From Monocercomonoides exilis PA203 (Eukaryota > Protista > Preaxostyla): a stretch of DNA of 64,000 nucleotides. Both the position numbers and the translations under genes were made by a program. The stretch lies in assembly GCA_001643675.2 (NCBI GenBank), contig LSRY02000026.1:682001-746000 (forward strand), in the 5' to 3' direction. Shown here piece after piece: positions 7,777 to 53,786 of the stretch. How positions within the stretch are numbered: the stretch's first letter is position 1; each line of letters begins with the position of its first letter. The notes below the pieces were generated by a model. That model made no database searches and was not told the origin of the DNA. It worked only from the letters and a program-made list of their open reading frames with translations.

Positions 7777-10700
7777 TTATTTTTTCAAAACACTCATCTC
7801 CTTTTTGATTGTTTCATCATCAAGTCTGCTTCCTACACATGAATAAGAAGCATTTTCATCTTCATTATCTTCCTCATCGTTTTCAAAGTCTATAGCATCA
7901 GAGACGGTCAATGTTGTTGCTCCAGCTGGAAAGTGACGAATGAAATCGCGCTTCAAAAGAGAAAGCATGGGACGAGATGACGGGTCTTGCGACAAACACA
8001 AACAAATCACATCAAACAACTGTGAGAATCTCACTCTTTCCACATCTGGCCTTTCTTTGGTGCTGATTTTATCTCCCGCCACCTCTGCTGGATACTCCCC
8101 AAACGGGATATCCAGTGTCAGACACTCCCACAACATCATCCCGATCGAAAACACCACTGACTTCTTCGTTGCCCCCATCTTCTTGTTCACCTGCAGCTCT
8201 GGTGCCTTCCACCTTAGATACTCTATTTTGTAATCTTCCTCATCCTCAAATGCAGATGATGGAAGAGAGTCATCATCATCATCACTTGCAGAAGTCACAA
8301 CTGTTGATGAAGAGATGGAGGATGAATCAGAATCATCAGAAGAGAAGTCAGAATGCATCACAATGCAGATCACCATATGCTCAGAGAACAACACAATATG
8401 CGGACTGAGATTGGAAAGTGATTGAAGAGGGTTTTCCATTTCATCAAATGAGTGAAGGGCAAGATTAGCCACCCAGAACAGGATTTGGGCAGCTGTCTGT
8501 TCCCTCTCTTGTAAACTTCCAATTGCCATCTCCTTCTTCGCATTCCTTCCATGCAGCAACATGAACAGCGAGTCACGAAGATCCACAATCAGTTTTTCAT
8601 GAGGAGATGAACAAGCCATTGCATCCACCAAGTTTGACATCGACGAAGTGGTTGGACACAGACTCTCCGATCGAACAAACGTTGAATCTGAATCTGTTGT
8701 TGAAGTTGATGAAATTGATGGTGATGGTGTTCTCTTTCTTGTCTCTTCTTCTTCTTCATCAACCTTCTCCAACATCCATTGAGGAATCTTGTCTGAATCT
8801 CTTCCAAGGATGTATTCAGTCGATCCACTTTCAGAGAGAAGATGCTCAGATGATTCTGAATGTCCCAAACTTTTCGCATACACTCTCTTCTTTATCCTCT
8901 CTTCATTCTTCTTTTCTGCTTCCCTCTCTGCCCTCCTCCATTGCTCCTCTGGTGACATCTCCATCGTCACCATCTCAAATGCCTTCGGATCCTTTCTGAT
9001 GTTATCGTTCACAATCTCTCTCAAGTCTTCTGCTTCATTCTTCACCTTCTTCCATCTGACGATTGAAATTACTGCAATAATAAGAATGACAAACAGAACA
9101 ATTCCCATAACAATCACAATAATAGGCCAAAATGATTTTCCATCTTTTCCTCCTTCAACAATCCTTTCATCTCCTTTTCCAGCATTTTCACTCCTGTTCT
9201 TCACAATAAATCGCTCTGTTGATGAATGAGAATCTGATTTCCCAAACACAATCCACACACTCACTTCTGTCTCTTCTCTCACTTTCTCCCATTCCAAACA
9301 TGAAATAACTGAGTGAATCTCATTCTCTGACACAAACCCTTCTTCTTCAATCCCCTTTCTCACAATCTCCTCTTCATCCCCATTTTTCATACTCATCTTC
9401 ACTGACAAATCACATGGCAGAAGCAGCTTTCCATGAATCATCAACTCCACATCCCCATTTGGATGAGAAACATTCTTCACCTCTTCCAAAATGGGGATGA
9501 AAAATGATGATCCTCTTTCAGCTGCTATCCCTCCCAATTCGCATCCCTCATCCAATATCCACAATGATGTGTTTTTCTCTATTCCATCACCCCCTTTCAC
9601 ACTCACAACATCCAACTCCCCATTCCCTTCACAAATCACATTCCTTCTGGCTGATGGATATCCCTCGATCGATGGGTTGTTGTTCTCAAACTTTCCATTT
9701 TCAATCTTCACACTCGCTCCACTCACCCACAACCCACCTGCCTTGCTATTTCTGATTGTTGTTTCCCTCATCTCCACTTTGCTCTTCTCAACATCAACCA
9801 ATGACTCATTCCATTTGCATAATCCCTCTTTTCTATTGTTTTCTTCATTGACTATTTCATCTTCTCTTTCTCCATCAAACACACATGCCTCAATCCTCAC
9901 ATTCTTGGAATTCCTGATCTGCATCATGCTTCCCTTATCAACTGAATTCAAACACTTTCCGAATGAGCTGTTAAGCACACTCACCTCTTGCTCAGCATCT
10001 TCCATCCCAATCACACACCCCTTTGACATCACAGTCACATTCACAACTCCCATCTCTTTCATCTCAACTTTCGCTTTCCCTCCAACACTCACAACATCCC
10101 CCTCACATTTGATGTTCGATATTCTTGATTCAACAATTATCACATTCGATTCTTCACAAAATAAAAGAACTGATATTGTTGAAAAAATATCTCTGAATGT
10201 TGAATCAAATATCTTCAGCCCCCCACTTTCCACACTCACAACTGAACTGTTCAACTTCATTTCCTCAACTGTTGTTGTTGGAGAAGAGAAGAATTCACAT
10301 TCTTGTATTTTTGTCATTCCATTCTTCACCTTCATGAGACAATTGTGAGTTGACTCAAATCCATCTTCAAACTGGAATGAGCATCTCTCCACTGAACATT
10401 CATTCACAAACTCCATCACACAATCCTTCTCACCTGATTTCTCAATCTTGCAGTTCAACCGAACAACCCCCTGTGTCTTTTTCAATGAGTTCACAACCAG
10501 ATCTCCAATCACACACTCCTTCCTCACAAACCCTTCTCCATCAATCAGAATCCCATTCATCACCCCTTCCTGGATGTGCTCAACCCCACAGTTGATGCTG
10601 GAACAAGGGTTGCTCTGTGCTCCACACCCCCTCCCATCACTCCCTCTCCCACTCACAAACACCTGTGCCGAATAATAGAATGTGATCAGCGGAATCAGAT

Positions 10701-13700
10701 CAACATCTCCCTCGCTCAAAACATCCCTCCCACAGATCGAGTTGTTCGAGTTCAGTGACTCCTGGTTGTAGTTCAGTGCAAACAGTGTTTCGTTGATCTG
10801 GTGAGCAATCGAGTGGCATCTGACAAACACGTCTTTCCCCACATGTGCCTCATTCATCACAAACAGAATGTTCACAATCTTGAAATTCAGAGGCGGAATC
10901 GGACTTTCATTTCCATAATTCGCATGTGGGTCAGACCCATCAATGAACAGCCCTCCTCCACACCCTGTCTCACTCGAGCACTTGCACATCGAAAATGAGC
11001 TTCCATTCACTTTCAACACCGACTCCCCACTCTTCAGCACCACTCTCATCCCCCCTCCTTCATCACTCAAACCACTCTTGCAACTCGACATCGAACACTC
11101 ATCCATCACACACTCCACCCCATCCTCAAATGATCCCACATCAACAATACTCGCTCCAATCCCTTCGTTTGTGATGTTCGCAAATGAACACCCAACAATC
11201 CTCAGAACTGGTCTGTTCCCATTTGAAAATACCTTCTTTTCTCCATTCATCTGGGTTTCCTCCTCAATCATCGAAATCAGGCTTCTTTCTGTCACATCAG
11301 CAAATGAGATGTTCACATTCTGAAGTGTCACCTCACCTGCACTTGGTCTGAACGCAATCAACCCTTTCAACTCTGAAATCAAACTCAACGAACATCTCTC
11401 AATCACAACACTCCCCCCATTCACTCTCATCACACAATATCCAAAACTTTCTGCCACCCCTCTCCCTGGCCCAAATGAACAATCTGACACTGACAATAAT
11501 GTGTTTGTTCCAGAGGATTTAATCAACACTTCATGATGGGTTGTGATGGCTGGCTTGGTGAATGACACATTCACAAATGACAGACTCACATTCGAGGAGA
11601 TCATTGAACCATCGTGCAGATCATTCTCATCTTCATCACTGATCGTCACCCCTGTCCCTTTCTTTGTCCCTTCAATCACCACTTTTGGTGAATCTGAAAT
11701 TGATGATGAAAACGATATGGAATGGCTCAGCAGCCCTGATCCCACAATGGCAATATGTGTTTCTCCTCCTCCAAGTGTTGGATATCGAAGTGATATCAAG
11801 TGGTCAATCGATGAGCATGGTGCCTCGGAATACCCACACCCACTGAAGTCTCCTCCTTTCTCTCGAGAAACAAACCCATCCCCACTCCAGTTCCTCCACA
11901 AATACACAACCAGCGGAATCACATATCCCTCCTCTCCTGTCGTCTTCCTCTCCCATCCACACAATTCATCCAACGATCCCAACTCCTCTAAACTCATCTC
12001 CCATTTCAGGTGCTCCTCATTCACAATCTCGCTCAGATCCCATCCTGAAACAAACACATTCTTCCCTTTCCAGGCATTGCATCCCTCAAATTCCATCCCT
12101 TCAAGAACAAATGTTCCCATCTCATCTGCCAGCTTCACAAACATCCCTCCTCCCATTCCTCTCCCTCCTTCCTCAACATCCTCTCTTGGCACTTCACACC
12201 CAGATAATTTCACATTTTTCATTTCCAACCTCCCTCCTTTTCCCACTGATATCTTCATCCCTCCCCCTTTCATCCCACTCCCCCCTGAACACACTGATGA
12301 CAAATTGCATCCTTCAATATTCACAATCCCATTCACACCCATCTCCACATTCAAACATCCTCCTCCTCCTCCTCCACTCCCACCAACAACTTCCACTCCA
12401 CTCATTCGGCTGCTATTCATCTCCAATTCAACTCCATTCGAAACAACAATTGGCGATTTCCCACTCATTCTCACTCCCCCTTCCATCACAAATCCATTCA
12501 CAATCAGCCCTCCTCCCTCAACACATATCACATTGTATCCAATCACTTCATCATTGACAAATGAGACTGAACAGCTCGTGATTGTGATGGTTGATGATGA
12601 TGAGGAGGAGTGGATAAATCCACTTCTCTTCCCATTCATTTCTTCATTCAGCACAAATGCCAAATGTCTCATCTCAAATGATTTTGAACATTCAATAAGG
12701 TTATTCTGAGTTATCGATCCTTCATCCCTCACAACCACCCTCATCCCTTCTTCTTTCCCACACACACGAACCTCAAATGAAACCACTTTCATCTCGTTCT
12801 TTATCCATGATTCTGAGATAACTTCAATTTCATTCACATTGATGCTCGCTCTCTTCCCAACACAATAGTCAATCGTCAAACACCCAAACTCCTCAAACCC
12901 ACAATGGCTCTGATCCAGTGCCCTCTCTCCTCTCCCATCAACTCCCAACTTCGAGCCAATTGAACACAAATACACAAACAGCGGAATCACTTCCCCTTCT
13001 CTCCCATCCTCACTTCCACACAACTTCAACACATCTGATGGAATCACACCAAAATCAAAAAATGAAAATGAGCTCCCATTCACTTTCCACTCCAACAACA
13101 CTCCTCCACCACATTCAACAAACACATCCTTCCCATATCGAGCTTTGTTATCCTCTCCAAACACAAACAAACCCTCTCTTCCTGATTCCATTTTCATTGA
13201 ACCATCCCTGCTCTCCATCACAATCATCATTCCTCCACCTCTCCCTTCTCTCCTCCCATCTGAACTCTCCCCTGAACCCTTCGCCTCACACCCATCAATC
13301 ACACAACTCCCATTCACAACAACACTCCCTTCCCCCTTCACAACAACACTCATCCCTCCTCCTCTTCCACCAACACACCTGCACCCCTTCACAACACACG
13401 ACTCAATCACAATTATCCCATTCTTCCCCTCATCTCTCTCTGCTCCAACCACTCCACTCACCCATCCTCCATCTCCACTTCTCTTCTCAATGTTGTTCAC
13501 CTCGCATCCACAAAACACAACTGATTCCACCCCTTCACCAAACTCAATCACTGAATGTTCTCCAAATCTCAAGGTCTCTGTGATCACCAATCCCTCCACT
13601 TTCACTTTTCCCCCAATCACATTCACAAAACAATATCCAATGGAATTCTCAGATGAACAAACAACAGAACAGTCAGTGAGTGCGAGGAGTGTGGAGTTGG

Positions 13701-16700
13701 ATGAAATCAGAGATGATGATGATGCACCAGACAGAACAGATGGAACACTGAACTTGATGTTTCTCACTGAACATTTGCTCAACACCTCAATCAGACAAGA
13801 TGACTCAAAATTCTCTGGTGCTTTCACCTTAATCTCTATCCCTTTTGTCACACATGAAATCTCCCATTCACAGCCATCTGTCATTCCAACTGCCTCAGCA
13901 AGCACATATCCTGAATCCAATTCGATCTTCTTGTTTGTGTCTGCATATCTCACTTGCGCTGCATGGGTGATGGTTGCACACGGATAATAGTCAAACCCAC
14001 AGAACCACGAGTCGTATCCACCCAGTCCATTCTCTTTCGCCTTCCCCACATGTGCTGCACTGGGATATGAATCCAAAAACACATTCAGTGGAAACAGCCC
14101 CATTGTTGTGTCACTCCGATCATATCCCTCAAGCTCATTGTATTTTGAATTGTCATGTTGGACATTCAGCGTTGAGGAGCTTATTCCCCAGCTCGCTGAA
14201 TCGCTCCCATTCACAAACACATAATTCCCTCCCAACGAGGCAGAACACCCTGAAAAGTCAACTGACACAATCGAGAAGTCAATCGAGTTGTCAGCCAGAT
14301 ACAGCATCATCCCTCCTCCATATTTGCCACTTGTGCATCTCTTGAATGTTGATGAAACAACCTGAAGCTTGCTCGTATCTGTTTCCATCTCAACCTTGAT
14401 CCCTCCACCACTGCCATCCTCACACTCACAATCCTCAATTGTCACATTCTGAACAATAAATGTCTCCCCTTCCTTTACACTCTTTGCCACAACCACCCCA
14501 TCTCCTTCAATCAACTTCACATTCCTCACAGACACATTCTTCAACATGCTCTCTCCAGATGAAGTGGCTGTCAAAAACAGGTAAGATGAGGAGGATGAAA
14601 AAGGAGATAAAACAGGTTCAGATAACAATGATTGAGAAATATTCATATCTTTGATCTCCACATCAACCATCGACAGCTGTAACAGCGACACCACAAACAC
14701 TGATGAAGACATCACATAGCCTCCAGTTTTACTCGTGATGATCACAACATCCTCCAATGAAAGTGACCCACTCCCATCAGACACCACAGCCACACTCGGT
14801 GAAGTTTCTGAAATTGAATTGCAATCAACCTTCAAGTGACTCATTCCCAAATAACCTGTTGACACGCTGAACAGAGGTCTAGTTGATGAAAGAGATTTCA
14901 TTTCAATAACACTCTTATCTTTGCCTCTCCCAATGACTGAAATCTTCTTTGTTCCGATATCAATCGTTGTTGCCTCACTTTGATGATTCCCTTCCAGCAG
15001 TGCGATTGTCAAGCTAATCTGCACCTCGCACATCTCAAATCCCTTCTTCATTGTCAGACAAGGATATGTGGTATTTGCCCCACAAAGCGGAGTTGCATCA
15101 CTCCCATTCACAGAAACATAAATAGTCTTATCCTTCAGCCAATCTTTCTTTTCTGTATGCTGAAATTCCCAACTCCCTGAATAATAATAGTTGTATTTGT
15201 AACACACTCTTCTGTCGTTTGGATTAGTAGTTAAACAATCCAAAAACGGATTTGAACTTAAGTGTGCACTAAAATAGTCCAAATAGCTCACATCATGCCC
15301 ATATGGAGTGGAAGTTGTTTTGCACTTGCAGTCGTGAAAGAAAAGAAAAATACAATAAATTGCATCTTCTGGAATTGTTTGTTTGCCATTTTCCAGAAGG
15401 AATCCCCCGCCATCTTGTCTGGCAGAGCAGGATATAAACTGAATGCTCCTCATTTTGAATGTAGCTGGCACACCATAGCAACGCATGCCTCCGCCAACTG
15501 TGTTAGTAACTGAGCAAAAAGTGAAATTACAGTCAAACATGCATGCATTCTCCCCATTCCAATTCTCTGATCCAATGCAATCTGTTCCCAAAACATCAAA
15601 ATTGTAAAGATTTAACCCTCCTCCATAGCTATTTGCTATGCAGTTCTGGAATTTACATCCACTAATCACAACACACGTTGAAATCGAATAAAAGAACGCC
15701 CCACCCCCATATTGGTACAGAGCGGTACAATTATTAATTGAATTATTCTCGATTTTAACTTCTTTTATATATGCGCACATTATTCCCCCACCGCAACTGT
15801 GTGCAGTACAATCATTGAATATGCAATTCGAAATACGCACTGAGGCTGATGATTGGTTGCACATACAAATTGCCCCTCCACTCGAAGCACCATCTTCCCA
15901 TGTACTTTCTGTTCCTGTTGTTTTCGATCCATTCCATTCACACCAAATAAATGTATTCGCTCCATTTTCTGTTTCATTTTGTCTGTCTGTTTTCAATGGT
16001 GCCTCTGAAGTTCCTTCACATACAACATTTCTTGTCCGACAACACCCAATGAATGAGGTGTTTGAGGCAGTCAAAGAGGCATAGAGGTTGTTGAGGGAAT
16101 GAACAATTCCTCCATCATAAACATCACAGACTGATGAAAATGAGCAACTGTTCATCAGACATGCGCTTTGGGTTGACATTGTGGTTGAAGGTGAACATAC
16201 CTCATTTGCTGTTGAGATGTTGAAAAATGATAGTTGTGAAAGTGAAACCAGAGAGATGGATGATGAAGAGAGAAATGGGGTTGAAGAAGTGCGAAAAGAT
16301 GAAAAATGGGAAGAGCAAATAGAAACAATGTCATTTTTTGAAAATTTCCCTTCCAACGTTTTTGATGAAAACAGAGAAGGTATTATCTGTTCAGTCAAGG
16401 TTGAGGTTGAAGGCAATCTGAGTGAAATGTTGGTGAATAATCCACAGCTCCCACAAAAATCAAAGGGGGGCATCTCCCTCTCAACTCCAATCACACATCC
16501 ACTCAACTCAACAAAACTTCCATCCGATGCCCTGAGCACACTCTCCCCACCGATTTCCCTCAACCCCAACAAATTCAGTTTCATTGATGAATTGACCAGG
16601 ACAAGACATCCCTCAACCCCACTTCCATCGCACACACCCTCCTTTCCCCACATTTTCCACTCATCACAAAAACTCCATTTTTGAACTTTCTCGATCCTTC

Positions 16701-16986
16701 TTCTTCCTTCATTCCATTGTTTTGTGTATTTCTTCATCACTCTCTCTTCTTTCCTGGTCTCTCCCACTCCACCTTCTTTTCCATCAATATATGTATCAAA
16801 TAAATTATCATCTCTATATTTGCTATTTTGAATCGTCTCTCGCCATGTGCCTTCAGGATAATCCAATTCTCTTCCATTCAATGAATTTTCGGTAAGTCTT
16901 GTTCCATCTCTTGTAGCATCATTGCACACGCATTCAACACAAATTGTACACACACAATAAAATATTCCTGACAGCACCAATACCAT
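7777..16986 (-). CDS. giant type-I membrane receptor-like protein (~3070 aa): signal-like N-terminus, GG-rich beta-helix/Cys-capped repeats, one TM helix, kinase C-lobe-like pseudokinase tail
   Basis: Uninterrupted ORF 7777-17043; first ATG at 16986 (MVLVLSGIFYCVC). Repeated GGAI/GGGM and CGxxxxPCxTI motifs. TM WPIIVIVMGIVLFVILIIAVISIV followed by RWKK. RWKAPE..KSVVFSIGMMLWECLT..PF..RP corresponds to kinase subdomains VIII-XI. Confidence 0.88.
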   Translation of the reverse strand: MVLVLSGIFYCVCTICVECVCNDATRDGTRLTENSLNGRELDYPEGTWRETIQNSKYRDDNLFDTYIDGKEGGVGETRKEERVMKKYTKQWNEGRRRIEKVQKWSFCDEWKMWGKEGVCDGSGVEGCLVLVNSSMKLNLLGLREIGGESVLRASDGSFVELSGCVIGVEREMPPFDFCGSCGLFTNISLRLPSTSTLTEQIIPSLFSSKTLEGKFSKNDIVSICSSHFSSFRTSSTPFLSSSSISLVSLSQLSFFNISTANEVCSPSTTMSTQSACLMNSCSFSSVCDVYDGGIVHSLNNLYASLTASNTSFIGCCRTRNVVCEGTSEAPLKTDRQNETENGANTFIWCEWNGSKTTGTESTWEDGASSGGAICMCNQSSASVRISNCIFNDCTAHSCGGGIMCAYIKEVKIENNSINNCTALYQYGGGAFFYSISTCVVISGCKFQNCIANSYGGGLNLYNFDVLGTDCIGSENWNGENACMFDCNFTFCSVTNTVGGGMRCYGVPATFKMRSIQFISCSARQDGGGFLLENGKQTIPEDAIYCIFLFFHDCKCKTTSTPYGHDVSYLDYFSAHLSSNPFLDCLTTNPNDRRVCYKYNYYYSGSWEFQHTEKKDWLKDKTIYVSVNGSDATPLCGANTTYPCLTMKKGFEMCEVQISLTIALLEGNHQSEATTIDIGTKKISVIGRGKDKSVIEMKSLSSTRPLFSVSTGYLGMSHLKVDCNSISETSPSVAVVSDGSGSLSLEDVVIITSKTGGYVMSSSVFVVSLLQLSMVDVEIKDMNISQSLLSEPVLSPFSSSSSYLFLTATSSGESMLKNVSVRNVKLIEGDGVVVAKSVKEGETFIVQNVTIEDCECEDGSGGGIKVEMETDTSKLQVVSSTFKRCTSGKYGGGMMLYLADNSIDFSIVSVDFSGCSASLGGNYVFVNGSDSASWGISSSTLNVQHDNSKYNELEGYDRSDTTMGLFPLNVFLDSYPSAAHVGKAKENGLGGYDSWFCGFDYYPCATITHAAQVRYADTNKKIELDSGYVLAEAVGMTDGCEWEISCVTKGIEIKVKAPENFESSCLIEVLSKCSVRNIKFSVPSVLSGASSSSLISSNSTLLALTDCSVVCSSENSIGYCFVNVIGGKVKVEGLVITETLRFGEHSVIEFGEGVESVVFCGCEVNNIEKRSGDGGWVSGVVGAERDEGKNGIIVIESCVVKGCRCVGGRGGGMSVVVKGEGSVVVNGSCVIDGCEAKGSGESSDGRREGRGGGMMIVMESRDGSMKMESGREGLFVFGEDNKARYGKDVFVECGGGVLLEWKVNGSSFSFFDFGVIPSDVLKLCGSEDGREGEVIPLFVYLCSIGSKLGVDGRGERALDQSHCGFEEFGCLTIDYCVGKRASINVNEIEVISESWIKNEMKVVSFEVRVCGKEEGMRVVVRDEGSITQNNLIECSKSFEMRHLAFVLNEEMNGKRSGFIHSSSSSSTITITSCSVSFVNDEVIGYNVICVEGGGLIVNGFVMEGGVRMSGKSPIVVSNGVELEMNSSRMSGVEVVGGSGGGGGGCLNVEMGVNGIVNIEGCNLSSVCSGGSGMKGGGMKISVGKGGRLEMKNVKLSGCEVPREDVEEGGRGMGGGMFVKLADEMGTFVLEGMEFEGCNAWKGKNVFVSGWDLSEIVNEEHLKWEMSLEELGSLDELCGWERKTTGEEGYVIPLVVYLWRNWSGDGFVSREKGGDFSGCGYSEAPCSSIDHLISLRYPTLGGGETHIAIVGSGLLSHSISFSSSISDSPKVVIEGTKKGTGVTISDEDENDLHDGSMISSNVSLSFVNVSFTKPAITTHHEVLIKSSGTNTLLSVSDCSFGPGRGVAESFGYCVMRVNGGSVVIERCSLSLISELKGLIAFRPSAGEVTLQNVNISFADVTERSLISMIEEETQMNGEKKVFSNGNRPVLRIVGCSFANITNEGIGASIVDVGSFEDGVECVMDECSMSSCKSGLSDEGGGMRVVLKSGESVLKVNGSSFSMCKCSSETGCGGGLFIDGSDPHANYGNESPIPPLNFKIVNILFVMNEAHVGKDVFVRCHSIAHQINETLFALNYNQESLNSNNSICGRDVLSEGDVDLIPLITFYYSAQVFVSGRGSDGRGCGAQSNPCSSINCGVEHIQEGVMNGILIDGEGFVRKECVIGDLVVNSLKKTQGVVRLNCKIEKSGEKDCVMEFVNECSVERCSFQFEDGFESTHNCLMKVKNGMTKIQECEFFSSPTTTVEEMKLNSSVVSVESGGLKIFDSTFRDIFSTISVLLFCEESNVIIVESRISNIKCEGDVVSVGGKAKVEMKEMGVVNVTVMSKGCVIGMEDAEQEVSVLNSSFGKCLNSVDKGSMMQIRNSKNVRIEACVFDGEREDEIVNEENNRKEGLCKWNESLVDVEKSKVEMRETTIRNSKAGGLWVSGASVKIENGKFENNNPSIEGYPSARRNVICEGNGELDVVSVKGGDGIEKNTSLWILDEGCELGGIAAERGSSFFIPILEEVKNVSHPNGDVELMIHGKLLLPCDLSVKMSMKNGDEEEIVRKGIEEEGFVSENEIHSVISCLEWEKVREETEVSVWIVFGKSDSHSSTERFIVKNRSENAGKGDERIVEGGKDGKSFWPIIVIVMGIVLFVILIIAVISIVRWKKVKNEAEDLREIVNDNIRKDPKAFEMVTMEMSPEEQWRRAEREAEKKNEERIKKRVYAKSLGHSESSEHLLSESGSTEYILGRDSDKIPQWMLEKVDEEEEETRKRTPSPSISSTSTTDSDSTFVRSESLCPTTSSMSNLVDAMACSSPHEKLIVDLRDSLFMLLHGRNAKKEMAIGSLQEREQTAAQILFWVANLALHSFDEMENPLQSLSNLSPHIVLFSEHMVICIVMHSDFSSDDSDSSSISSSTVVTSASDDDDDSLPSSAFEDEEDYKIEYLRWKAPELQVNKKMGATKKSVVFSIGMMLWECLTLDIPFGEYPAEVAGDKISTKERPDVERVRFSQLFDVICLCLSQDPSSRPMLSLLKRDFIRHFPAGATTLTVSDAIDFENDEEDNEDENASYSCVGSRLDDETIKKEMSVLKK

Positions 16987-31116: not shown

Positions 31117-31118
<2 letters not shown>

Positions 31119-40822: not shown

Positions 40823-40830
40823 AGACTCTT

Positions 40831-44531: not shown

Positions 44532-47500
44532 TCACACGATTATTATCCCCTTCACCATTTCTTTCTCCACATCATTTCTTGTTTTCCTCTCTCTTTTTTG
44601 TGGATTCACTGAAAGTTTCTCTTGTGATTCCGATATTGCTTGTGCTTCATCTTCTGTTTTGCTCTTTTCCTCTTCTGTGCCATCCTCATCCTCCATCGCA
44701 TCTGACATCGTCAGAATCATTGTTCCAGCTGGAAAGTGCTGAAACAGTTCTCTTTTCAGATCATCCAAAGAAATGCGAATCGAGCGTTGCGATTGCCAGC
44801 AGCTCTCCACAAGCTCTCCAAGCCCACTTTCTTCAACAAGAGCTGCCATGTCTGGCCTCTCCCCATTCAAAATCTTATCTCCAGCCACCTCTGCTGGATA
44901 CTCTCCAAACGGGATATCCAGTGTTAGACACTCCCACAACATCATCCCGATCGAAAACACTACTGACTTCTTCGTTGCCCCCATCTTCTTGTTCACCTGC
45001 AGCTCTGGTGCCATCCACCTCAAACACTCTTTTCTGTTGTATTCATCATCCTCAAATGCTGATGAAGGAAGAGAGTCTTCGCTATCATCACTGGCAGATG
45101 TCACAACAGTCGATGAAGAGATGGATGATGAGTCTGAATCATCATCAGATGAGAAGTCAGAGTGCATCACAATGCAGATCACCATGTGTTCTGAAAACAG
45201 AACAATGTGAGGACTCAGAGTGGAAAGAGAAGATAATCCATTTTCCATTTCGTCAAATGAATGAAGTGCGAGATTAGCCACCCAGAACAGGATCTGTGCA
45301 GCTGTTTGCTCCCTCTCCTGAAGAGTCCCAATTGCCATCTCCTTTGTCTTATTCCTTCCATGCAACAACATGAACAGTGAATCCCTCAAATCCACAATCA
45401 GCTTCTCATGAGGAGACGAGCAGGCCATCGCATCCACCAGATTCGACATCGATGAGGTGGTTGGACACAGACTCTCCGATCGAACAAATGTTGAATCTGA
45501 ATCTGTTGTTGAAGTTGATGAAATTGATGGTGATGGCGTTCGCTTTCTTGTCTCTTCATCATCTTCTTCCTTCTCATCAACCTTCTCGAGCATCCATTGA
45601 GGAATCTTGTCTGAATCTCTCCCCAAAATGTATTCAGTTGAACCACTCTCAGAAAGAAGATGTTCTGATGACTCTGAATGTCCCAAACTTTTCTCATACA
45701 CCCTCTTTTTCATTCTCTCTTCATTCTTCTTTTCTGCCTCCTTCTCTGCCCTCCTCCACTGCTCCTCTGGTGACATCTCCATCGTCACCATCTCAAATGC
45801 CTTTGGATCCTTCCTCACTGTGTCATTCACAATCTCCTCCAATTCCTTTGTTCTTCTCTTTTGCTTTCTCCAACGAACAACAAACAAAATAAATCCAATC
45901 AGAACAATCACAAGAATAGCTGCCATGATCATTACAATCAACAACAAAGAAGATTTTCCATCTTTTCCTCCTTCAACAATCCTTTCATCTCCTTTTCCAA
46001 CATTTTCACTCCTGTTCTTCACAATAAATCGCTCTGTTGATGAAGGCGAATCTCCTTTCCCAAACACAATCCACACACTCACTTCTGTCTCTTCTCTCAC
46101 TTTCTCCAGTTCTGAACATGAAATGAATGTGTGAATCTCATTCTCTGACACAAACCCTTCTTCTTCAATCCCCTTTCTCACTATCTCCTCTTCATCCCCA
46201 TCTTTCATGCTCATCTTCACTGACAAATCACATGGAAGAAGCAGCTTTCCCACAATCATCAACTCCACATTTCCATTTGGCTGAGAACTATTCTTCACCT
46301 CTTCCAAAATGGGGATGAAAAATGATGATCCTCTTTCAGCTGCTATCCCTCCCAATTCACATCCCTCATCCAATATCCACAATGATGAGTTATCTTTCAA
46401 CCCATCTCCCCCTTTCACACTCACAACATTCAACTCCCCATTCCCTTCACAAATCACATTCCTTCTGGCTGATGGATATCCCTCGATCGATGGGTTGTTG
46501 TTCTCAAACTTTCCATTTTCAATCTTCACACTCGCTCCACTCACCCACAACCCACCTGCCTTGCTATTTCTGATTGTTGTTTCCCTCATCTCCACTTTGC
46601 TCTTCTCAATATCAACCAATGACCCATTCCATTTGCATAATCCTTCTTTTCTATTGTTTTCTTCATTGATAACCTCGTTTTCATTTTCTCCATCAAACAC
46701 ACATGCCTCAATCCTCACATTCTTGGAATTCCTGATCTGCATCATGCTTCCCTTGTTCACTGAATTCACACATCTCCCAAATGAGCTGTTCAGCACACTC
46801 ACCTCTTTCTCAGCATCTTCTATCCCAATCACACACCCCTTTGACATCACAGTCACATTCACAACTCCCATCTCTTTCATCTCAACTTTCGCTTTCCCTC
46901 CAACACTCACAACATCCCCCTCACATTTGATGTTCGATATTCTTGATTCAACAATTATCACATTCGATTCTTCACAAAATAAAAGAATTGATGTTGTTGA
47001 ATGAATATCACTGAATGTTGTTTCGGTTATCTTCAGCTCTCCACTCTCCACACTCACAATTGAACTGTTCAACTTCAACTCAGCTGTTGTTGTTGGGGAA
47101 GAAGAGATGAATTCACATTTTTGGATCTCCATTGACCCATTCTTCACTTTCATAAAATAAGTGTGAGCTGACTCAAATCCATCTTCAAACTGGAATGAGC
47201 ACCTCTCCACTCCACATTCATTCACAAACTCCATCACACAATCCTTCTCAGCTGACTTCTCAATCTTGCAGTTCAACCGAACAATCCCCTGTGCCTTTTT
47301 CAATGAGTTCACAACCAGATCTCCAATCACACACTCCTTCCTCACAAACCCTTCCCCATAAATCAGAATCCCATTCATCACCCCTTCCTCGATGTGCTCA
47401 ACCCCACAGTCGATGCTCGCACACGGAATGCTCTGTGCCCCACATCCCCTCCCATCACTCCCTCTCCCACTCACAAACACCTGTGCCGAATAATAGAATG

Positions 47501-50500
47501 TGATCAGCGGAATCAGATCAACATCTCCCTCGCTCCAAACATCCCTCCCACAGATGGAGTTGTTCGAGTTCAGTGACTCCTGGTTGTAGTTCAACGCAAA
47601 CAGCGTTTCGTTGATCTGGTGAACAATCGAGTGGCATCTGACAAACACGTCTTTCCCCACATGTGCCTCATTCATCACAAACAGAATGTTCACAATCTTG
47701 AAATTCAGAGGCGGAATCGGACTTTCATTTCCATAATTCGCATGTGGGTCAGACCCATCAATGAACAGCCCTCCTCCACACCCTGTCTCACTCGAGCACT
47801 TGCACATCGAAAACGTGCTCCCATTCACTTTCAACACCGACTCCCCACTCTTCAGCACCACTCTCATCCCCCCTCCTTCATCACTCAAACCACTCTTGCA
47901 ACTCGACATCGAACACTCATCCATCACACACTCCACCCCATCCTCAAATGATCCCACATCAACAATACTCGCTCCAATCCCTTCGTTTGTGATGTTCGCA
48001 AATGAACATCCAATAACCCTCAAAACTGGTCTGTTCCCATTTGAAAAGTCTTTCTTTTCTCCATTCATCTGGTTTTCATCTTCCATCATCGAAATCAGAC
48101 TTCTTTCTGTCACTCCAGCAAATGAGATGTTCACATTCTGAAGTGTCACCTCACCTGCACTTGGACTGAAGGCAATCAACCCTTTCAACTCTGAAATCAA
48201 ACTCAACGAACACCTCTCAATCACAACACTCCCTCCATTCACTCTCATCACACAATATCCAAAACTCTCTGCCACCCTCCTCCCTGGGCCAAATGAACAA
48301 TCTGAAACTGACAATAATGTGTTTGCTCCAGAGGATTCAATCAACACTTCGTGATGGGTGGTGATGGCTGGCTTGGTGAATGACACATTCACAAATGACA
48401 GACTCACATTCGACGATATCATTGAACCATCAGACAAATCATTCTCATCTTCATCACTGATCGTCACCCCTGTCCCTTTCTTTGTCCCTTCAATCACAAC
48501 TTTTTGTGACTCTGATATTGATGAAGAAATTGATGATGAAAATGATGATGAAAATGAAATGGAATGGCTCAGCAACCCAGATCCCACAATGGCAATATGT
48601 GTTTCCCCTCCTCCAAGTGTTGGATATCGAAGTGATATCAAGTGGTCAATCGATGAGCATGGTGCCTCGGAATACCCACACCCACTGAAGTCTCCTCCTT
48701 TCTCTCGAGAAACAAACCCATCCCCACTCCAGTTCCTCCACAAATACACAACCAGCGGAATCACATATCCCTCCTCTCCAGTCATCTTCCTCTCCCATCC
48801 ACACAGCTCATCCAATGATCCCAACTCCTCTTCCTTTATCTCCCATTTCAGGTGCCCCTCATTCACTATCTCACTCAGATTCCATCCTGACACAAACACA
48901 TTCTTCCCTTTCCACCCATCACATCCCTCAAATTCCATCCCTTCCATCACAAATGTTCCCATCTCATCTGCCAGCTTCACAAACATCCCTCCTCCCATTC
49001 CTCTCCCTCCTTCCTCAACATCCTCTCTTGGCACTTCACACAAAGAATACCTCACTCCTTTCATTTCCAACCTCCCTCCCTTCCCCACCGATATCTTCAT
49101 CCCTCCCCCTTTCATCCCACTCCCTCCTGAACACACTGATGACAAATTGCATCCTTCAATATTCACATTCCCATTCACACCCATCTCCACATTCAAACAT
49201 CCTCCTCCTCCTCCACTTCCACCAACAACTTCCACTCCACTCATTCGGCTGTCATTCATCTCCAATTGAGCTCCATTCGAAACAACAATTGGTGATTTCC
49301 CACTCATTCTCGCTCCCCCTTCCATCACAAATCCATGAACAACCAACCCTCCTCCCTCAATACAAATCACACTGTATCCAATCATTTCATCATTTCCAAA
49401 TGTGACTGAACAGCTGGTCATTGTGATGGTTGATGATGATGAGGAGGAGTGGATAAATCCACTTCTCTTCCCATTCATTTCTTCATTCAGCACAAATGAC
49501 AAATGTCTCATCTCAAATGATTTTGTGCACTCAATAAGGTTATTCTGGGTTATCGATCCTTCATCCCTCACAAGCACACTCATCCCTTCTTCTTTCCCAC
49601 AAACACTCACCTCAAATGATGCTATTTTCATCTCATTCTTTATCCATGATTCTGAGATAACTTCAATTTCATTCACATTGATGCTCGCTCTCTTCCCAAC
49701 ACAATAGTCAATCGTCAAACACCCAAACTCCTCAAACCCACAATGGCTCTGATCCAGTGCCCTCTCTCCTCTCCCATCAACTCTCAGCTTTGTCCCCATT
49801 GAACACAAATACACAAACAGCGGAATCACTTCCCCTTCTCTCCCATCCTCACTCCCACACAACTTCAACACATCTGTTGGAATCACACCAAAATCAAAAA
49901 ATGAAAATGAGCTCCCATTCACTTTCCACTCCAACAACACTCCTCCACCACATTCAACAAACACATCCTTCCCATATTGAGCTTTGTTATTCTCCCCAAA
50001 CACAAACAAACCCTCTCTTCCAGATTCCATTTTCATTGAGCCATCCCTGCTCTCCATCACAATCATCATCCCCCCCCCTCTCCCTTCACTTCTCCCACCT
50101 GAACTCTCCCCTGAACCCTTCGCCTCACACCCATCAATCACACAACTCCCATTCACAACAACACTCCCTTCCCCATTCACAACAACATTCATCCCTCCTC
50201 CTCTTCCACCAACACACCTGCACCCCTTCACAACACACGACTCAATCACAATTATCCCATTCTTCCCCTCATCCCTCTCTGCTCCAACCACTCCACTCAC
50301 CCATCCTCCATCTCCACTTCTCTTCTCAATGTTGTTCACCTCACATCCGCAAAACACAACTGATTCCACCCCTTCACTAAACTCAATCAGCGAATGTTCT
50401 CCAAATATCAATGTCTCTCTGATCACCAATCCCTCCACTTTCACTTTTCCCCCAACCACATTCGCAAAACAATATCCAATGGGATTCTCGGATGAACAAA

Positions 50501-53500
50501 CAACAGAACAGTCAGTGAGTGTGAGGAGTGTGGAGTTGGATGTGATCAGAGATGATGATGATGCACCAGACAGAACATATGGAATACAGAACTTGATGTT
50601 TCTCATTGAACATTTGCTTTGCACATCAATCAGACAAGATGACTCAAAATTCTCTGGTGCTTTCACCTTAATCTCTATCCCTTTTGTCACACATGAAATC
50701 TCCCATTCATGGCCATCTGTCATTCCAACTGCCTCAGCAAGCACATATCCTGAATCCAATTCGATCTTCTTGTTTGTGTCTGCATATCTCACCTGTGCTG
50801 CATGGATGATGGTGGCACACGGATAATAGTCAAACCCACAGAACCACGAGTCGTATCCACCCACCCCATCCTTCCCTTTCCCCACATGTGCTGCATCTGG
50901 ATATCTGTCCAAATACACATTCAGTGGGAACAGCCCCATTGTTGTGTCACTCCGATCATATCCCACAATCTCATTGTATTTTGAACTGTCATGTTGAACA
51001 TTCAGCTTTTCTCTTGTTATTCCCCAGCTCACTGAATCGCTCCCATTCACAAATACATAATTCCCTCCCAACGGGGCAGAACACCCTGAGAAGTCAACTG
51101 ACGCAATCGAGAAGTCAATCGAGTTGTCAGCCAGATGCAGCATCATCCCTCCTCCATATTTGCCACTTCTGCATCTCTTGAATGTTGTTGTTCTTTCAAC
51201 CTGAAGCTTGCTTGCATCTGTTTCCATCTCAACCTTGATTCCTCCTCCACTGCCATTTTCACACCCACAATCTTCGATTGTCACATTCTGAACAACAAAT
51301 GTCTCCCCTTCTGCCACACTCTTTGCCACAACCACCCCATCTCCTTCAATCAACTTCACATTCTTCACCGTTAAGTTCACCAGCGTGCTCCCTCCAGATA
51401 CTGTGGATGTCAAAAAAAGGGCAGAGGAGGAAGATGAAGAAGAAGATAAAACAGGTTCAGAGAACAACGATTGAGAAATATTCATATCTTTGATCTCCAC
51501 ATCAACCATCGACAGCTGTGAAAGTGGAACCGCAAACACTGACGAAGAAATAACATATTCTCCAACATTACTCCTTGTAATCACAACATCCTCCAACGAG
51601 AGTGACCCACTCCTGTCAGAAACCACAACCACACTCGGAGAAGAAGGATTTGCGTTTGAGTTACAGTCAACCTTCATGTGCAACAAACCAAGGTGACCTG
51701 TTGAAACACTGAACAGCGATCCAGTTGATGAAAGGGATTTCATTTCAATCGAACTCTCCATCCTTCCTTTCCCAATGACTGAAATCTTCTTTGTCCCAAT
51801 CTCAATTGTTGCTGTCTCGCTTGTGTGATTCCCGCCCATCAGCGTTATATTCAAATTGACCTGGATCACACTCTTATCAACTGCAACACCAATGGTTCTG
51901 CATGCACTTGACTCATCCAATCCACACAACTCTTCTTCGCCACCTCCACTCACAGCAACAAATCGATTGAGAATTCCTCTCTTCAACCAATCCTTTTTTG
52001 ATGTTTCGTCATATGTCCATTTTTGTTCATTTGCATAATTGTGTGCAAAGCAGATCCTCTTATCGTTTGTGTTTGTGGTGTAACATTCGAAAAATGGATT
52101 TCCAGCGTTCAAATAGACATCGTAAGTATCAACATATTCAACATCATGCCCACGTGGATTGGCTGCATCCAAACAACTGCATCCGTGAAAAAATAAAAAC
52201 AAACAATAGATACCATCATCTGGTGCTGTTGTTCGATTTGGATGCAGCTCCAGTCCTCCACCCTCTTTTTTAGCCCAACAAGAAATAAATTGGGTGCTTC
52301 TCATTTTGAATTCAGCAGGAACATTATAGCAAAAGATCCCTCCACCAATTGAATTAGCAACCGAGCATGACGTGAAACAGCAATCAAACAAACATGCACT
52401 CTCCCCTTTTCCATATTCAGTTCCAACACATCCAATATCTGAAACATAAAAATTATCAAGATAAAGTCCTCCTCCGTATCCATTTCCCAGACAACTCCTG
52501 AATTCACATCCACTGATCCGAACACAATTAGTGATTGAAAAAATGCATATACCACCCCCACGATAATTCTGTGCCACACAAGAATCAAATGTGTTGTTAA
52601 CAATCTCGACCGATTTTAAATTGAAAAAATTAATACCACCTCCTCCATAATGAGCACAGCAGTTGTTGAAAGAGCAATGCGAAACAGACACCGATGCCGA
52701 CGTCTGACTGAACATGCAGATTGCCCCTCCACTTGACACTCCATCTGAGTATGAATTTTCTGCTCCTGTTGTCTTCGACCCATCCCATTCACACCAAATA
52801 AACGAATTGGACCCATTTTCTGTTTCATTATGCCTTCCTGGCTTTAATGGAACATCTTCAGTTCCTTCACATTCAACATTCCTTGTCCGACAACACCCAA
52901 TGAATGAGGTGTTTGAAACAGACAAGGAAGCTAAGGGGTTATTCAGAGAGTGAACAATTCCGCCATCATACACATCGCATACTGATGAGAATGAGCAACT
53001 GCTCAAAAAACATGTGGTTTGGGTTGACGTAGCGGTTGAAGGCGAGCATGCATCATTTGCTGTTGAAATATTGAAAAATGTGAGTTGAGAGAGTGAAACA
53101 AGAGGAATGAAGTGTGATGAGAGGAATGGGGCTGATGAGACACAAAAAGAAGAGAAATGTGATTCACTCAACGAAATAATGGCAGACTGTGAAAAGTGAT
53201 TGCCAAATTGTTCAGAAGTGAAAAGAGGAGGAAATTCATTCAAACCTTCAACATTTGGCTCAACAGAAACATTAACAAATGATCCAAAACTCCCTTCCAA
53301 CTCAAAAGGAGATAAATGTTGCCCCACAAAAAGAATGCACTCTCTCATTGAAAGAATGCTTCCTCTTTTTGCAATGAGTATTCTTTTTGATCCTTTTTCT
53401 CTCATCAACAGTTTCATTTCCATGATTGATGAATTAAAGCATTCCAAACAACCATCTATTTCGCTCCATTGGAAAATATTAGGCTTCTTCAAAATTCCAA

Positions 53501-53786
53501 TTTCTTTTCCTAATTCTTCTTTGTTGTTTTTTTCATCTTTCTGAAAGTCTTTTCCACGAATTTCACTCAACTTCATTTTTTTATTCAATCTTATATCATC
53601 TTCGTTGCATTTAATAAACTCAGTATTTGAAGGGTTTTTGCTAATCTGAAGCATGTTTCCATCCATTTCAATAACCTTTTCTTCTTTCATATTTTCTCCA
53701 ACCAAGTTGGAGATTTCTTTTGAGGCAGCGAAAAGAATGCAATACAAATAAGAACAGAAAACAAATATCCCTATTCCTGACATCAT
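44532..53786 (-). CDS. second giant receptor-like pseudokinase (~3084 aa), paralogue of 7777-16986
   Basis: Uninterrupted ORF; first ATG at 53786 (MMSGIGIFVFCSYLYCILFAAS, signal-like). Same repeats, TM LLLIVMIMAAILVIVLIGFILFVV-RWRK, and RWMAPE..WECLTLDIPF. Confidence 0.88.
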   Translation of the reverse strand: MMSGIGIFVFCSYLYCILFAASKEISNLVGENMKEEKVIEMDGNMLQISKNPSNTEFIKCNEDDIRLNKKMKLSEIRGKDFQKDEKNNKEELGKEIGILKKPNIFQWSEIDGCLECFNSSIMEMKLLMREKGSKRILIAKRGSILSMRECILFVGQHLSPFELEGSFGSFVNVSVEPNVEGLNEFPPLFTSEQFGNHFSQSAIISLSESHFSSFCVSSAPFLSSHFIPLVSLSQLTFFNISTANDACSPSTATSTQTTCFLSSCSFSSVCDVYDGGIVHSLNNPLASLSVSNTSFIGCCRTRNVECEGTEDVPLKPGRHNETENGSNSFIWCEWDGSKTTGAENSYSDGVSSGGAICMFSQTSASVSVSHCSFNNCCAHYGGGGINFFNLKSVEIVNNTFDSCVAQNYRGGGICIFSITNCVRISGCEFRSCLGNGYGGGLYLDNFYVSDIGCVGTEYGKGESACLFDCCFTSCSVANSIGGGIFCYNVPAEFKMRSTQFISCWAKKEGGGLELHPNRTTAPDDGIYCLFLFFHGCSCLDAANPRGHDVEYVDTYDVYLNAGNPFFECYTTNTNDKRICFAHNYANEQKWTYDETSKKDWLKRGILNRFVAVSGGGEEELCGLDESSACRTIGVAVDKSVIQVNLNITLMGGNHTSETATIEIGTKKISVIGKGRMESSIEMKSLSSTGSLFSVSTGHLGLLHMKVDCNSNANPSSPSVVVVSDRSGSLSLEDVVITRSNVGEYVISSSVFAVPLSQLSMVDVEIKDMNISQSLFSEPVLSSSSSSSSALFLTSTVSGGSTLVNLTVKNVKLIEGDGVVVAKSVAEGETFVVQNVTIEDCGCENGSGGGIKVEMETDASKLQVERTTTFKRCRSGKYGGGMMLHLADNSIDFSIASVDFSGCSAPLGGNYVFVNGSDSVSWGITREKLNVQHDSSKYNEIVGYDRSDTTMGLFPLNVYLDRYPDAAHVGKGKDGVGGYDSWFCGFDYYPCATIIHAAQVRYADTNKKIELDSGYVLAEAVGMTDGHEWEISCVTKGIEIKVKAPENFESSCLIDVQSKCSMRNIKFCIPYVLSGASSSSLITSNSTLLTLTDCSVVCSSENPIGYCFANVVGGKVKVEGLVIRETLIFGEHSLIEFSEGVESVVFCGCEVNNIEKRSGDGGWVSGVVGAERDEGKNGIIVIESCVVKGCRCVGGRGGGMNVVVNGEGSVVVNGSCVIDGCEAKGSGESSGGRSEGRGGGMMIVMESRDGSMKMESGREGLFVFGENNKAQYGKDVFVECGGGVLLEWKVNGSSFSFFDFGVIPTDVLKLCGSEDGREGEVIPLFVYLCSMGTKLRVDGRGERALDQSHCGFEEFGCLTIDYCVGKRASINVNEIEVISESWIKNEMKIASFEVSVCGKEEGMSVLVRDEGSITQNNLIECTKSFEMRHLSFVLNEEMNGKRSGFIHSSSSSSTITMTSCSVTFGNDEMIGYSVICIEGGGLVVHGFVMEGGARMSGKSPIVVSNGAQLEMNDSRMSGVEVVGGSGGGGGCLNVEMGVNGNVNIEGCNLSSVCSGGSGMKGGGMKISVGKGGRLEMKGVRYSLCEVPREDVEEGGRGMGGGMFVKLADEMGTFVMEGMEFEGCDGWKGKNVFVSGWNLSEIVNEGHLKWEIKEEELGSLDELCGWERKMTGEEGYVIPLVVYLWRNWSGDGFVSREKGGDFSGCGYSEAPCSSIDHLISLRYPTLGGGETHIAIVGSGLLSHSISFSSSFSSSISSSISESQKVVIEGTKKGTGVTISDEDENDLSDGSMISSNVSLSFVNVSFTKPAITTHHEVLIESSGANTLLSVSDCSFGPGRRVAESFGYCVMRVNGGSVVIERCSLSLISELKGLIAFSPSAGEVTLQNVNISFAGVTERSLISMMEDENQMNGEKKDFSNGNRPVLRVIGCSFANITNEGIGASIVDVGSFEDGVECVMDECSMSSCKSGLSDEGGGMRVVLKSGESVLKVNGSTFSMCKCSSETGCGGGLFIDGSDPHANYGNESPIPPLNFKIVNILFVMNEAHVGKDVFVRCHSIVHQINETLFALNYNQESLNSNNSICGRDVWSEGDVDLIPLITFYYSAQVFVSGRGSDGRGCGAQSIPCASIDCGVEHIEEGVMNGILIYGEGFVRKECVIGDLVVNSLKKAQGIVRLNCKIEKSAEKDCVMEFVNECGVERCSFQFEDGFESAHTYFMKVKNGSMEIQKCEFISSSPTTTAELKLNSSIVSVESGELKITETTFSDIHSTTSILLFCEESNVIIVESRISNIKCEGDVVSVGGKAKVEMKEMGVVNVTVMSKGCVIGIEDAEKEVSVLNSSFGRCVNSVNKGSMMQIRNSKNVRIEACVFDGENENEVINEENNRKEGLCKWNGSLVDIEKSKVEMRETTIRNSKAGGLWVSGASVKIENGKFENNNPSIEGYPSARRNVICEGNGELNVVSVKGGDGLKDNSSLWILDEGCELGGIAAERGSSFFIPILEEVKNSSQPNGNVELMIVGKLLLPCDLSVKMSMKDGDEEEIVRKGIEEEGFVSENEIHTFISCSELEKVREETEVSVWIVFGKGDSPSSTERFIVKNRSENVGKGDERIVEGGKDGKSSLLLIVMIMAAILVIVLIGFILFVVRWRKQKRRTKELEEIVNDTVRKDPKAFEMVTMEMSPEEQWRRAEKEAEKKNEERMKKRVYEKSLGHSESSEHLLSESGSTEYILGRDSDKIPQWMLEKVDEKEEDDEETRKRTPSPSISSTSTTDSDSTFVRSESLCPTTSSMSNLVDAMACSSPHEKLIVDLRDSLFMLLHGRNKTKEMAIGTLQEREQTAAQILFWVANLALHSFDEMENGLSSLSTLSPHIVLFSEHMVICIVMHSDFSSDDDSDSSSISSSTVVTSASDDSEDSLPSSAFEDDEYNRKECLRWMAPELQVNKKMGATKKSVVFSIGMMLWECLTLDIPFGEYPAEVAGDKILNGERPDMAALVEESGLGELVESCWQSQRSIRISLDDLKRELFQHFPAGTMILTMSDAMEDEDGTEEEKSKTEDEAQAISESQEKLSVNPQKRERKTRNDVEKEMVKGIIIV

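Follow-up and report, generated by a model that had tools for sequence, protein, structure and literature searches.

Segmental gene conversion makes mosaics in large surface families such as VSG, var and VSP, in which expression is exclusive and is governed by dedicated expression sites or silencing. In plants, unequal crossing-over and gene conversion between neighbors in clusters of receptor-like kinase, receptor-like protein and resistance genes produce mosaic ectodomains beside conserved signaling parts. Those clusters encode LRR or other ectodomains, usually with active kinases, and have a known immune function, in all of which they differ from the two genes described here.

Gene conversion between paralogues is also reported in passages on the Entamoeba Gal/GalNAc lectin (PMC3125142) and the Trichomonas transmembrane cyclases (PMC2914791). 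As described in those passages, these are, like the family studied here, large membrane-protein families of gut or mucosal protists, but the proteins are other ones, and the Monocercomonoides exilis genes are 9 kb long with a stalk homogenized across the sampled members. Similar in build is Trypanosoma cruzi DGF-1, described with seven "rib" modules, a "hat" domain and several transmembrane (TM) helices (bioRxiv 10.64898/2026.07.27.741050), whose very large genes form a large dispersed family encoding an extracellular region of tandem modules followed by a membrane anchor. The likeness is one of described layout, and DGF-1, as presented there, is without a kinase-like tail.

The largest gene family of the gut flagellate M. 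exilis is that of "protein tyrosine kinase" (tyrosine-kinase-like) genes. In the relevant passages these genes are just "tyrosine kinases" coinciding in part with "unclassified repeats," and counts and chromosomal positions are all that is given (Karnkowska et al. 2019, PMC6759080; Treitli et al. 2021, PMC8767320). PMC8767320 uses neither the term "recombination" nor "gene conversion," and the kinase, gene-family and recombination passages of both papers mention neither a beta-helix ectodomain nor loss of catalytic motifs nor a mosaic structure. We analyzed 64,000 nt of M. exilis PA203 (contig LSRY02000026.1, positions 682,001 to 746,000; hereafter the window, whose own numbering is used for A and B) that contain two intact members of this family, genes A and B. 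Both share with it a PF07714 match above the curated cut-off and many near-full-length paralogues. A genome search yielded 3113 first-look candidates, and all of those scored (50/50) had E=0 and 71-86% amino acid identity.

Layout of genes A and B

Both genes, with all their features, lie on the minus strand, and both coding sequences are without introns: gene A occupies 7777..16986 (3069 codons; first ATG at 16986, stop at 7777-7779) and gene B, of the same architecture, 44532..53786 (3084 codons). Gene A runs from a signal-like N-terminus and a variable head (16207..16986, aa 1-260) through five beta-helix modules, a single TM helix and a kinase-like C-lobe to a variable tail. The modules are weakly related to one another (14062-15126, 12952-14061, 11887-12951, 10672-11886 and 9187-10671), and the homogenized stalk spans 9121..14871. 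The TM helix (9058..9123, aa 2622-2643), followed by RWKK, forms part of a divergent TM/juxtamembrane (JM) cassette and has its equivalent in B at 45876-45953; the kinase-like region lies at 7921..8610 (aa 2793-3022) in A and 44724-45419 in B. The products, of ~3,070 aa, are predicted type I receptors with a probable surface location, whose ectodomain may bind a ligand, probably a glycan, and whose cytoplasmic tail may act as a scaffold.

Mosaic similarity between A and B and across the family

Homology between A and B is limited to the coding regions (8066-16311 versus 44872-53162, 87% nucleotide identity), and the flanks are unrelated. The genes have in common seven perfect runs of at least 100 nt, the longest of 190 nt. 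Two such runs had been singled out in an earlier, sequence-only reading of the window, and both are exact: 10806-10995 equals 47624-47813 (190/190), and 10006-10169 equals 46824-46987 (164/164) within a full run of 166 nt (10004-10169). The same reading had described a barely alignable N-terminal head, a moderately similar distal beta-helix, and a TM block and C-tail that diverge abruptly. This pattern was recovered, with amino acid identities of 0.18-0.35 across the first ~200 residues and 0.35-0.64 at residues ~350-690, against stalk values of 0.86-1.0; divergence is also seen in the TM block, whose borders are sharp, and in the C-tail past ~aa 2990. Silent sites are likewise far from even. 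Between A and B, dS is strongly non-uniform, from 0.16 to 2.07 by segment, with values of 2.07 for the head, 1.41 for the distal region, 0.16 for the stalk (~5.7 kb), 0.48 for the TM/JM part, 0.48-0.80 for the cytoplasmic part and 1.25 for the tail. The stalk is homogenized, as proposed, beyond this pair, with a family-wide mean pS of 0.18 versus 0.33-0.61 in other regions. Nor are A and B a special pair, a dozen other members being about as close to A (82-84% nucleotide identity) as B is.

Clustering of identical runs exceeds chance, since a GENECONV-like permutation within the stalk alone gave P≤2e-4 for the longest concordant A-B run at all polymorphic sites and P=0.007 at third positions only; P≤2e-4 was also obtained for B-L012 and A-L011. 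GC3 gives no clear sign that conversion was GC-biased: it is higher in the stalk (0.45) than in the head (0.29), but also high (0.48) in the non-homogenized cytoplasmic part.

Individual tracts connect B to several paralogues. With L012 (C21:840050-850000, ~105 kb from gene B) it shares 50698..51596, 899 nt with 2 adjacent mismatches (99.8%) and perfect runs of 522 and 374 nt; an extra perfect run of 157 nt extends to 51811, and past the abrupt border at 51811/51812 differences occur about every 2-3 nt. With L011 (C21:806470-816469) it shares 49155..49525 (371 nt, 3 mismatches), of which 310 nt (49169-49478) are identical without a break, and with gene A 47539..48016 (A 10806-11190; 97.9% identity, perfect runs of 190 and 188 nt). 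In the A stalk, 14040-14300 is a 261-nt perfect run with L011. Tracts reach up to 522-929 nt and have sharp borders. The heads have other affinities: the nearest sampled relatives of the A head are L020 on contig C1 (77-86% nucleotide identity) and the neighboring gene fragment L022 (89%), which represents only the first 3.6 kb of A's nearest relative (C21:638924-647679), whereas identity to B is a mere 44-50%. The B head (52590..53786) is painted L011-like, at 82.5% nucleotide identity overall and up to 93% in 300-nt windows.

The codon alignment comprised 20 intact members (A, B and 18 other full-length genes), of the 332 that published work annotates; five head fragments and the pseudogenes L001 and L013 entered pairwise comparisons only. 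Painting by a copying model against the 18 other full-length members, a sample from which the true donors of many segments are missing, divides A into 20 segments and B into 15. The nearest neighbor of each gene changes repeatedly along its length: the A stalk is painted by L011, B, L002, L007, L012 and L009 at 92-99% identity, and the best matches of B alternate among L011, L012 and A. A PHI-type test gave z=-9.6, and ~50% of informative site pairs violate the four-gamete test. Trees built per segment are discordant, and AU tests agree (p 1e-3 down to 1e-47). The tests reject the grouping (A,B) in the head (p 1e-29), S3 (2e-9) and S5 (7e-4), although S7 supports it at 99. For (B,L012), support is 100 in S3, against rejection in the head (8e-7) and the tail (6e-47). 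The head (98), S5 and the tail support (B,L011), which S3 rejects (1.6e-4).

Sharing also depends on chromosomal position. Perfect tracts of at least 120 nt amount to 197 nt per same-contig pair versus 44 nt per C21-versus-C26 pair, a 4.4-fold excess (permutation P 4e-4), and the farther apart two genes lie, the less tract length they share (Spearman -0.53, P 7e-7). Mean stalk identity, by contrast, is the same in both sets of pairs (0.914 and 0.913). Tail types T1 and T2 are both found with H1 heads as well as with H2 heads, and four TM/JM types accompany each of these head types. Segment exchange among members, as the sequence-only reading had it, is upheld by the uneven dS, the discordance between segment trees, the identical tracts and the reassortment of head, TM and tail cassette types.

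Probable gene conversion and competing explanations

The patchwork of A and B is best read, with a probability that we put at roughly 0.8, as the outcome of repeated ectopic gene conversion or non-allelic homologous recombination among paralogues, mostly on the same chromosome. Short tracts (~0.1-1 kb) would be copied repeatedly from several paralogues, mainly chromosomal neighbors in this sense, and the exchange would hold the ~5.7-kb stalk alike at silent sites family-wide. Abrupt borders would arise because tracts end where the sequences are too diverged to pair, as in the head, distal helix, TM block and C-tail, and exchanges starting in the common stalk would reshuffle head, TM/JM and tail cassette types. 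The process fits ordinary ectopic gene conversion of a common kind, not previously described for M. exilis; the mechanism is not of a new kind.

Could A and B instead be a duplicate pair without exchange, their regions evolving at unequal rates under unequal constraint? Constraint does explain the similarity of the cytoplasmic region (dN/dS 0.07), but the head is 13 times as diverged as the stalk at silent sites, trees of different segments contradict one another (AU p values to 1e-47), and B alternates in its best matches; we consider this reading extremely improbable and reject it on the AU tests and the uneven dS. It is also very unlikely that the identical patches arose as artifacts when reads from a repeat family were corrected or assembled, or when the assembly was polished with short reads. 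Canu with Nanopolish and ten rounds of Pilon is prone to paralogue cross-talk and could in principle blur copies locally, and stalk 31-mers have a summed depth 100-200 times that of single-copy head unitigs, so that short reads map ambiguously in the stalk. A comparison with public unitigs (Logan) covered 5,801 letters; these unitigs, at most 664 nt long, break at paralogue-shared borders, and none bridges a tract border. However, mis-mapping is blind to chromosomal position, and sharing tracks same-contig location and distance, as mean stalk identity does not. Tracts of 522-929 nt with sharp borders exceed the 300-nt MiSeq reads, and both genes retain intact 9.2-kb reading frames. The B head and distal region are matched without differences by unitigs of two origins, a DNA run of 2016 on the same sample and the RNA libraries of another study, with unique B-specific head sequence present unaltered in bulk RNA-library contigs.

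The sequence-only reading had gone further, to a possible antigenic-variation repertoire. A dedicated, selected system of this kind, with programmed head swaps onto a constant stalk and exclusive expression in the manner of VSG, var or Giardia VSP, appears distinctly unlikely. The reassorted head, TM/JM and tail types would suit it, as would the size of the family, the variability of the head and distal region (the most variable parts, with family-wide pN/pS 0.74 and 0.46) and the many copies, on C80, C71 and C53, of truncated head-region fragments (aa ~200-700, 66-74% identity) that could act as donors. The main visible effect of exchange, however, is homogenization of the stalk and not diversification, and sharing drops with physical distance as in passive ectopic recombination. 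Head dN/dS is 0.37-0.59, below 1, in five pairs, so that no diversifying selection is detected at the level of gene regions. In this the variable part is unlike that of VSG, var and VSP, and whereas those families are known for exclusive expression, the M. exilis family is known here from sequence and bulk RNA. Neither a switch element nor a motif conserved at the borders appeared in A, B and the sampled members, and M. exilis is described as a commensal in the literature passages that we draw on. Nothing indicates a programmed diversification or antigenic-variation system.

A broader idea, which we regard as unlikely, is that the family is a recognition repertoire, its stalk a recombination handle that reassorts beta-helix heads onto a constant pseudokinase signaling tail. 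If true, reassortment would proceed on evolutionary or even clonal time scales, the head library might include many transposon-borne fragments, and the binding of bacterial prey or of glycans in the gut could be tuned; the system would then be a eukaryotic counterpart to receptor diversification by cassettes.

Ectopic gene conversion among paralogues, the reading that we prefer, has practical consequences, as work on this family that ignores the mosaicism will be misled, whether it builds gene trees, calls orthologues, masks repeats or maps short reads. The genes of this family are giant multi-beta-helix receptors with a dead kinase tail and distance-dependent concerted evolution, which gives both an architecture and an evolutionary mode to the largest gene family of a model amitochondriate eukaryote.

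Beta-helix ectodomain and kinase-like tail

Module M2 of gene A (12952..14061, aa 976-1345) has, in its AF2 model (pLDDT 81.8, pTM 0.85), the fold of a right-handed parallel beta-helix of the pectin-lyase-like type. We base this assignment on VIA re-alignment, because in a Foldseek search of the PDB all top rows were beta-helices, yet at E≥0.03. The re-alignment gave Z 18-21 and an rmsd of ~3.1 A over ~260 residues, with PL6 lyases as top matches and further matches to tailspikes and polygalacturonase. Against the Pfam Beta_helix profile (PF13229), module M1 scored 20.4 bits (E 4.4e-4), below the cut-off of 25.9, and the other modules had no match.

The cytoplasmic region matches PF07714 (PK_Tyr_Ser-Thr) at 33.0 bits in A and 36.7 bits in B, against a curated cut-off of 23.1, over profile positions 161-258 only in both. 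PDB profiles likewise match with C-lobes only (TAK1, ILK, MLKL). Subdomains VIII-XI alone are detectable in A, with an acidic/Ser-rich insert before the APE motif. Upstream of the activation segment there is no Pfam or PDB-profile match to an N-lobe (Gly-rich loop, beta3 Lys of VAIK), and charged or Ser/Thr-rich sequence fills the stretch between TM helix and C-lobe; at pLDDT 39, the AF2 model of the cytoplasmic region is too poor to rule out a cryptic N-lobe. The DF(S) and APE motifs are kept in both genes. By manual alignment the catalytic loop HRDxxxxN is missing, A and B reading S-(N/T)-LSPHIVLF without the His-Arg-Asp and the Asn. As judged from these motifs, the tails are catalytically dead tyrosine-kinase-like C-lobes, or pseudokinases. 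An Atlas search brought up generic kinases and clusters of the protein's own type, nothing else.

The cytoplasmic core had been proposed to be conserved within an exchanging family. Conserved it is, but not homogenized: with dS 0.5-0.8 and dN/dS 0.07, its sequence indicates upkeep by purifying selection. Homogenization of the stalk and purifying selection on the tail are in this way separable inside one gene, of which the family offers a clean example. The S-(N/T)-LSPHIVLF segment itself is invariant in 19 paralogues.

The two giant genes and their products

The dominant features of the window (G000:C21:682001-746000, in a genome of 82.3 Mb and 101 contigs) are two intron-less ORFs on the minus strand, gene A at 7777-16986 (C21:689777-698986; 3069 codons counted from the first ATG) and gene B at 44532-53786 (C21:726532-735786; 3084 codons). 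Their similarity is limited to coding regions (8066-16311 versus 44872-53162, 87% nucleotide identity), with no relation between the flanks. They share seven perfect runs, each 100-190 nt long, and the two quoted in the sequence-only reading are indeed identical over 190 of 190 and 164 of 164 nt. The similarity gradient described there also holds, with amino acid identity of 18-35% in the first ~200 residues, 35-64% at residues ~350-690, and 86-100% in the stalk, as do the sharp borders beyond which the transmembrane (TM) block and the final ~80 residues diverge.

The ectodomain comprises five modules, each opening with a CG-x-PC motif (aa 635, 996, 1362, 1717, and 2121) and only weakly related to one another (22-31% identity). 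Similarity to Pfam Beta_helix stays below threshold. Module 2 was modelled with AF2 from 78 module sequences (pLDDT 82, pTM 0.85), and the model aligns structurally with PL6 alginate lyases, phage tailspikes, and polygalacturonase at Z about 21 and an rmsd of about 3.1 Å over about 260 residues, which identifies the predicted fold as a right-handed parallel beta-helix. A charged, Ser/Thr-rich stretch comes after the one TM helix (A aa 2622-2643). Kinase similarity starts only at the APE motif (PF07714 positions 161-258), and the region also matches the C-lobes of TAK1, ILK, MLKL, and CTR1. At the catalytic-loop position stands LSPHIVLF, lacking HRD and Asn and unchanged across 19 paralogues; the DF(S) and APE motifs are retained, with a long acidic/Ser insert in place of the activation loop. 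The altered catalytic loop and the partial match justify, on sequence grounds, the name pseudokinase, although a cryptic N-lobe may be present.

Homogenisation, selection, and module exchange

We compared Nei-Gojobori estimates of dS between A and B by segment. Values are 2.07 in the head, 1.41 in the distal region, 0.16 in the stalk (alignment codons 750-2650), 0.48 in the TM/juxtamembrane segment, 0.48-0.80 in the cytoplasmic part, where dN/dS is 0.07, and 1.25 in the C-tail, so that synonymous divergence is far from uniform along the gene. In a set of 16 genes from contigs C21 and C26, pS likewise averages 0.18 in the stalk versus 0.33-0.61 elsewhere. This contrast allows two kinds of conservation to be separated within one gene: the stalk is similar at silent sites, reflecting homogenisation at the DNA level, whereas the kinase-like tail is similar at the protein level only, reflecting purifying selection on old copies. 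A homogenised stalk joined to a conserved cytoplasmic core, as proposed from the sequence, is thus upheld.

The family is very large, with 3113 first-look candidates, and all 50 of the 50 scored are matches at E=0. Across 20 full-length loci taken for comparison, A is 82-84% identical in nucleotides overall to a dozen members, B among them, and A and B are no special pair. The nearest neighbour switches repeatedly along both genes. The head of A is closest to a locus on contig C1 (L020, 77-86%) and to an adjoining gene fragment (L022, 89%), L011 on C21 is its nearest relative (up to 98%) over alignment codon columns 800-1050 of the gene, and several later blocks of A are closest to B. In B, the head is L011-like (up to 93%), a tract of 899 nt differs from L012, ~105 kb away, by two adjacent mismatches only and shows an abrupt border at 51811/51812, a further tract of 371 nt is 99.2% identical to L011, two blocks are A-like, and the tail is again L011-like (92-96%). 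Under a minimum-cost copying model, A is pieced together from 20 segments and B from 15, which clears about a quarter of the mismatches that remain under the best single donor. Heads of type H1 and heads of type H2 are both found joined to T1 as well as T2 tails, and both are combined with four TM/juxtamembrane types.

In the stalk taken by itself, none of 5000 permutations matches the longest concordant run of polymorphic sites (P<=2e-4; P 0.007 at third codon positions only), and a PHI-type statistic lies 9.6 sd under the permutation mean. About half of informative site pairs fail the four-gamete test. Maximum-likelihood trees of ten segments are mutually discordant, with AU tests in agreement. 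The grouping of A with B is recovered in S7 (support 99) and S6 (90) and rejected in the head (p 1e-29), S3 (2e-9), and S5 (7e-4); for B with L012, S3 gives support of 100, and rejection comes from the head (8e-7) and tail (6e-47); for B with L011, the head, S5, and tail all lend support, and S3 rejects the grouping (1.6e-4). The trees are therefore not congruent, and together with uneven dS, identical tracts, and reassorted cassettes they support module exchange between family members.

Two full-length pseudogenes on the same contig resemble these genes: L001 (C21:1027100-1037099) is 86% identical in nucleotides to A, with the same head and tail type, and L013 (C21:853070-862970) is 89% identical to B. 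Both are broken by in-frame stops, and pairwise alignment to A and B shows no frameshifting indels in the gene body. Over B cds ~2401-2700, L013 shows 100% identity to B, so pseudogenes too are partners in exchange.

Elsewhere in the genome, contigs C80, C71, and C53 carry dozens of short ORFs (480-830 aa; for example, C80:1311496-1312992 and C80:1786406-1787818) whose similarity to A and B is confined to head residues ~200-700 (66-74% identity); several form facing pairs. These are probably a gene fragment carried by a Sola2-like non-autonomous transposon family, and they could serve as gene-conversion donors.

Proximity dependence and the nature of the exchange

For 17 genes from C21 and C26, sharing of perfect tracts at least 120 nt long averages 197 nt in same-contig pairs versus 44 nt in between-contig pairs (label permutation P 4e-4) and drops with distance within contigs (Spearman -0.53, P 7e-7), while mean stalk identity is equal (0.914 and 0.913, respectively). 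Distance-dependent tract sharing over flat mean identity is the pattern predicted by passive ectopic recombination. Assembly collapse, read mis-mapping, or polishing error might also produce identical patches, and public unitigs are not long enough to span the tract borders. However, mis-mapping and polishing errors would not yield tract sharing that depends on distance. Unitigs of a 2016 DNA run match the head and distal region of B without differences. The public unitigs give single-copy depth (about 30) on the B head versus summed thousands on stalk words. Assembly collapse is unsupported and unlikely. Transcription of B is probable, since contigs unique to its head are also present in RNA libraries from an independent study.

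The sequence-only reading had gone further, suggesting a candidate system of receptor diversification and a possible sensing or antigenic-variation repertoire. A dedicated system for diversification or antigenic variation finds no support here. The patchwork reads best as the work of ordinary ectopic gene conversion that depends on proximity, within a family of giant beta-helix receptor-pseudokinases, an explanation to which we assign a probability of roughly 0.8. PMC6759080 describes the family as the largest in the M. exilis genome (332 "protein tyrosine kinases", of which 320 are tyrosine-kinase-like). According to PMC8767320, family genes overlap unclassified repeats, and the words "recombination" and "gene conversion" are absent from that paper; the 15 top-ranked papers of a combined-term literature search make no mention of Monocercomonoides. 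Our data add the decay of exchange with distance, the split between homogenisation and purifying selection within one gene, and a tabulation of cassette reassortment.

Other elements in the window

A perfect inverted repeat of 918 bp (100% identity; 23973-24890 and 25258-26175) flanks an AT-rich spacer of 367 bp (80% A+T) and could be a palindrome, a long-TIR transposon, or an assembly fold-back. A dispersed repeat occurs three times, at 20495-21751, 26212-27422, and 63182-63976; the copies are 67-68% identical, and their ORFs have no Pfam match. At 37220-40823 is a Merlin-type DNA transposon with terminal inverted repeats of 265 bp (99.6% identical), whose ORF at 37418-38164 matches an ISXO2/IS1595-like DDE transposase. 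Adjoining it, an RVT_1 reverse-transcriptase fragment (40956-41657) marks the remnant of a retroelement. On the minus strand at 56706-61373, an ORF of 1555 aa (Glu 29%, Lys 20%; no match in a Pfam scan) has the appearance of a giant, charged coiled-coil protein and accounts for the extreme GC and AT skew there. The plus-strand ORF at 54-2201 matches PRT6_C (UBR1-type E3 ligase C-terminal) barely at threshold, and its gene begins upstream of the window start.
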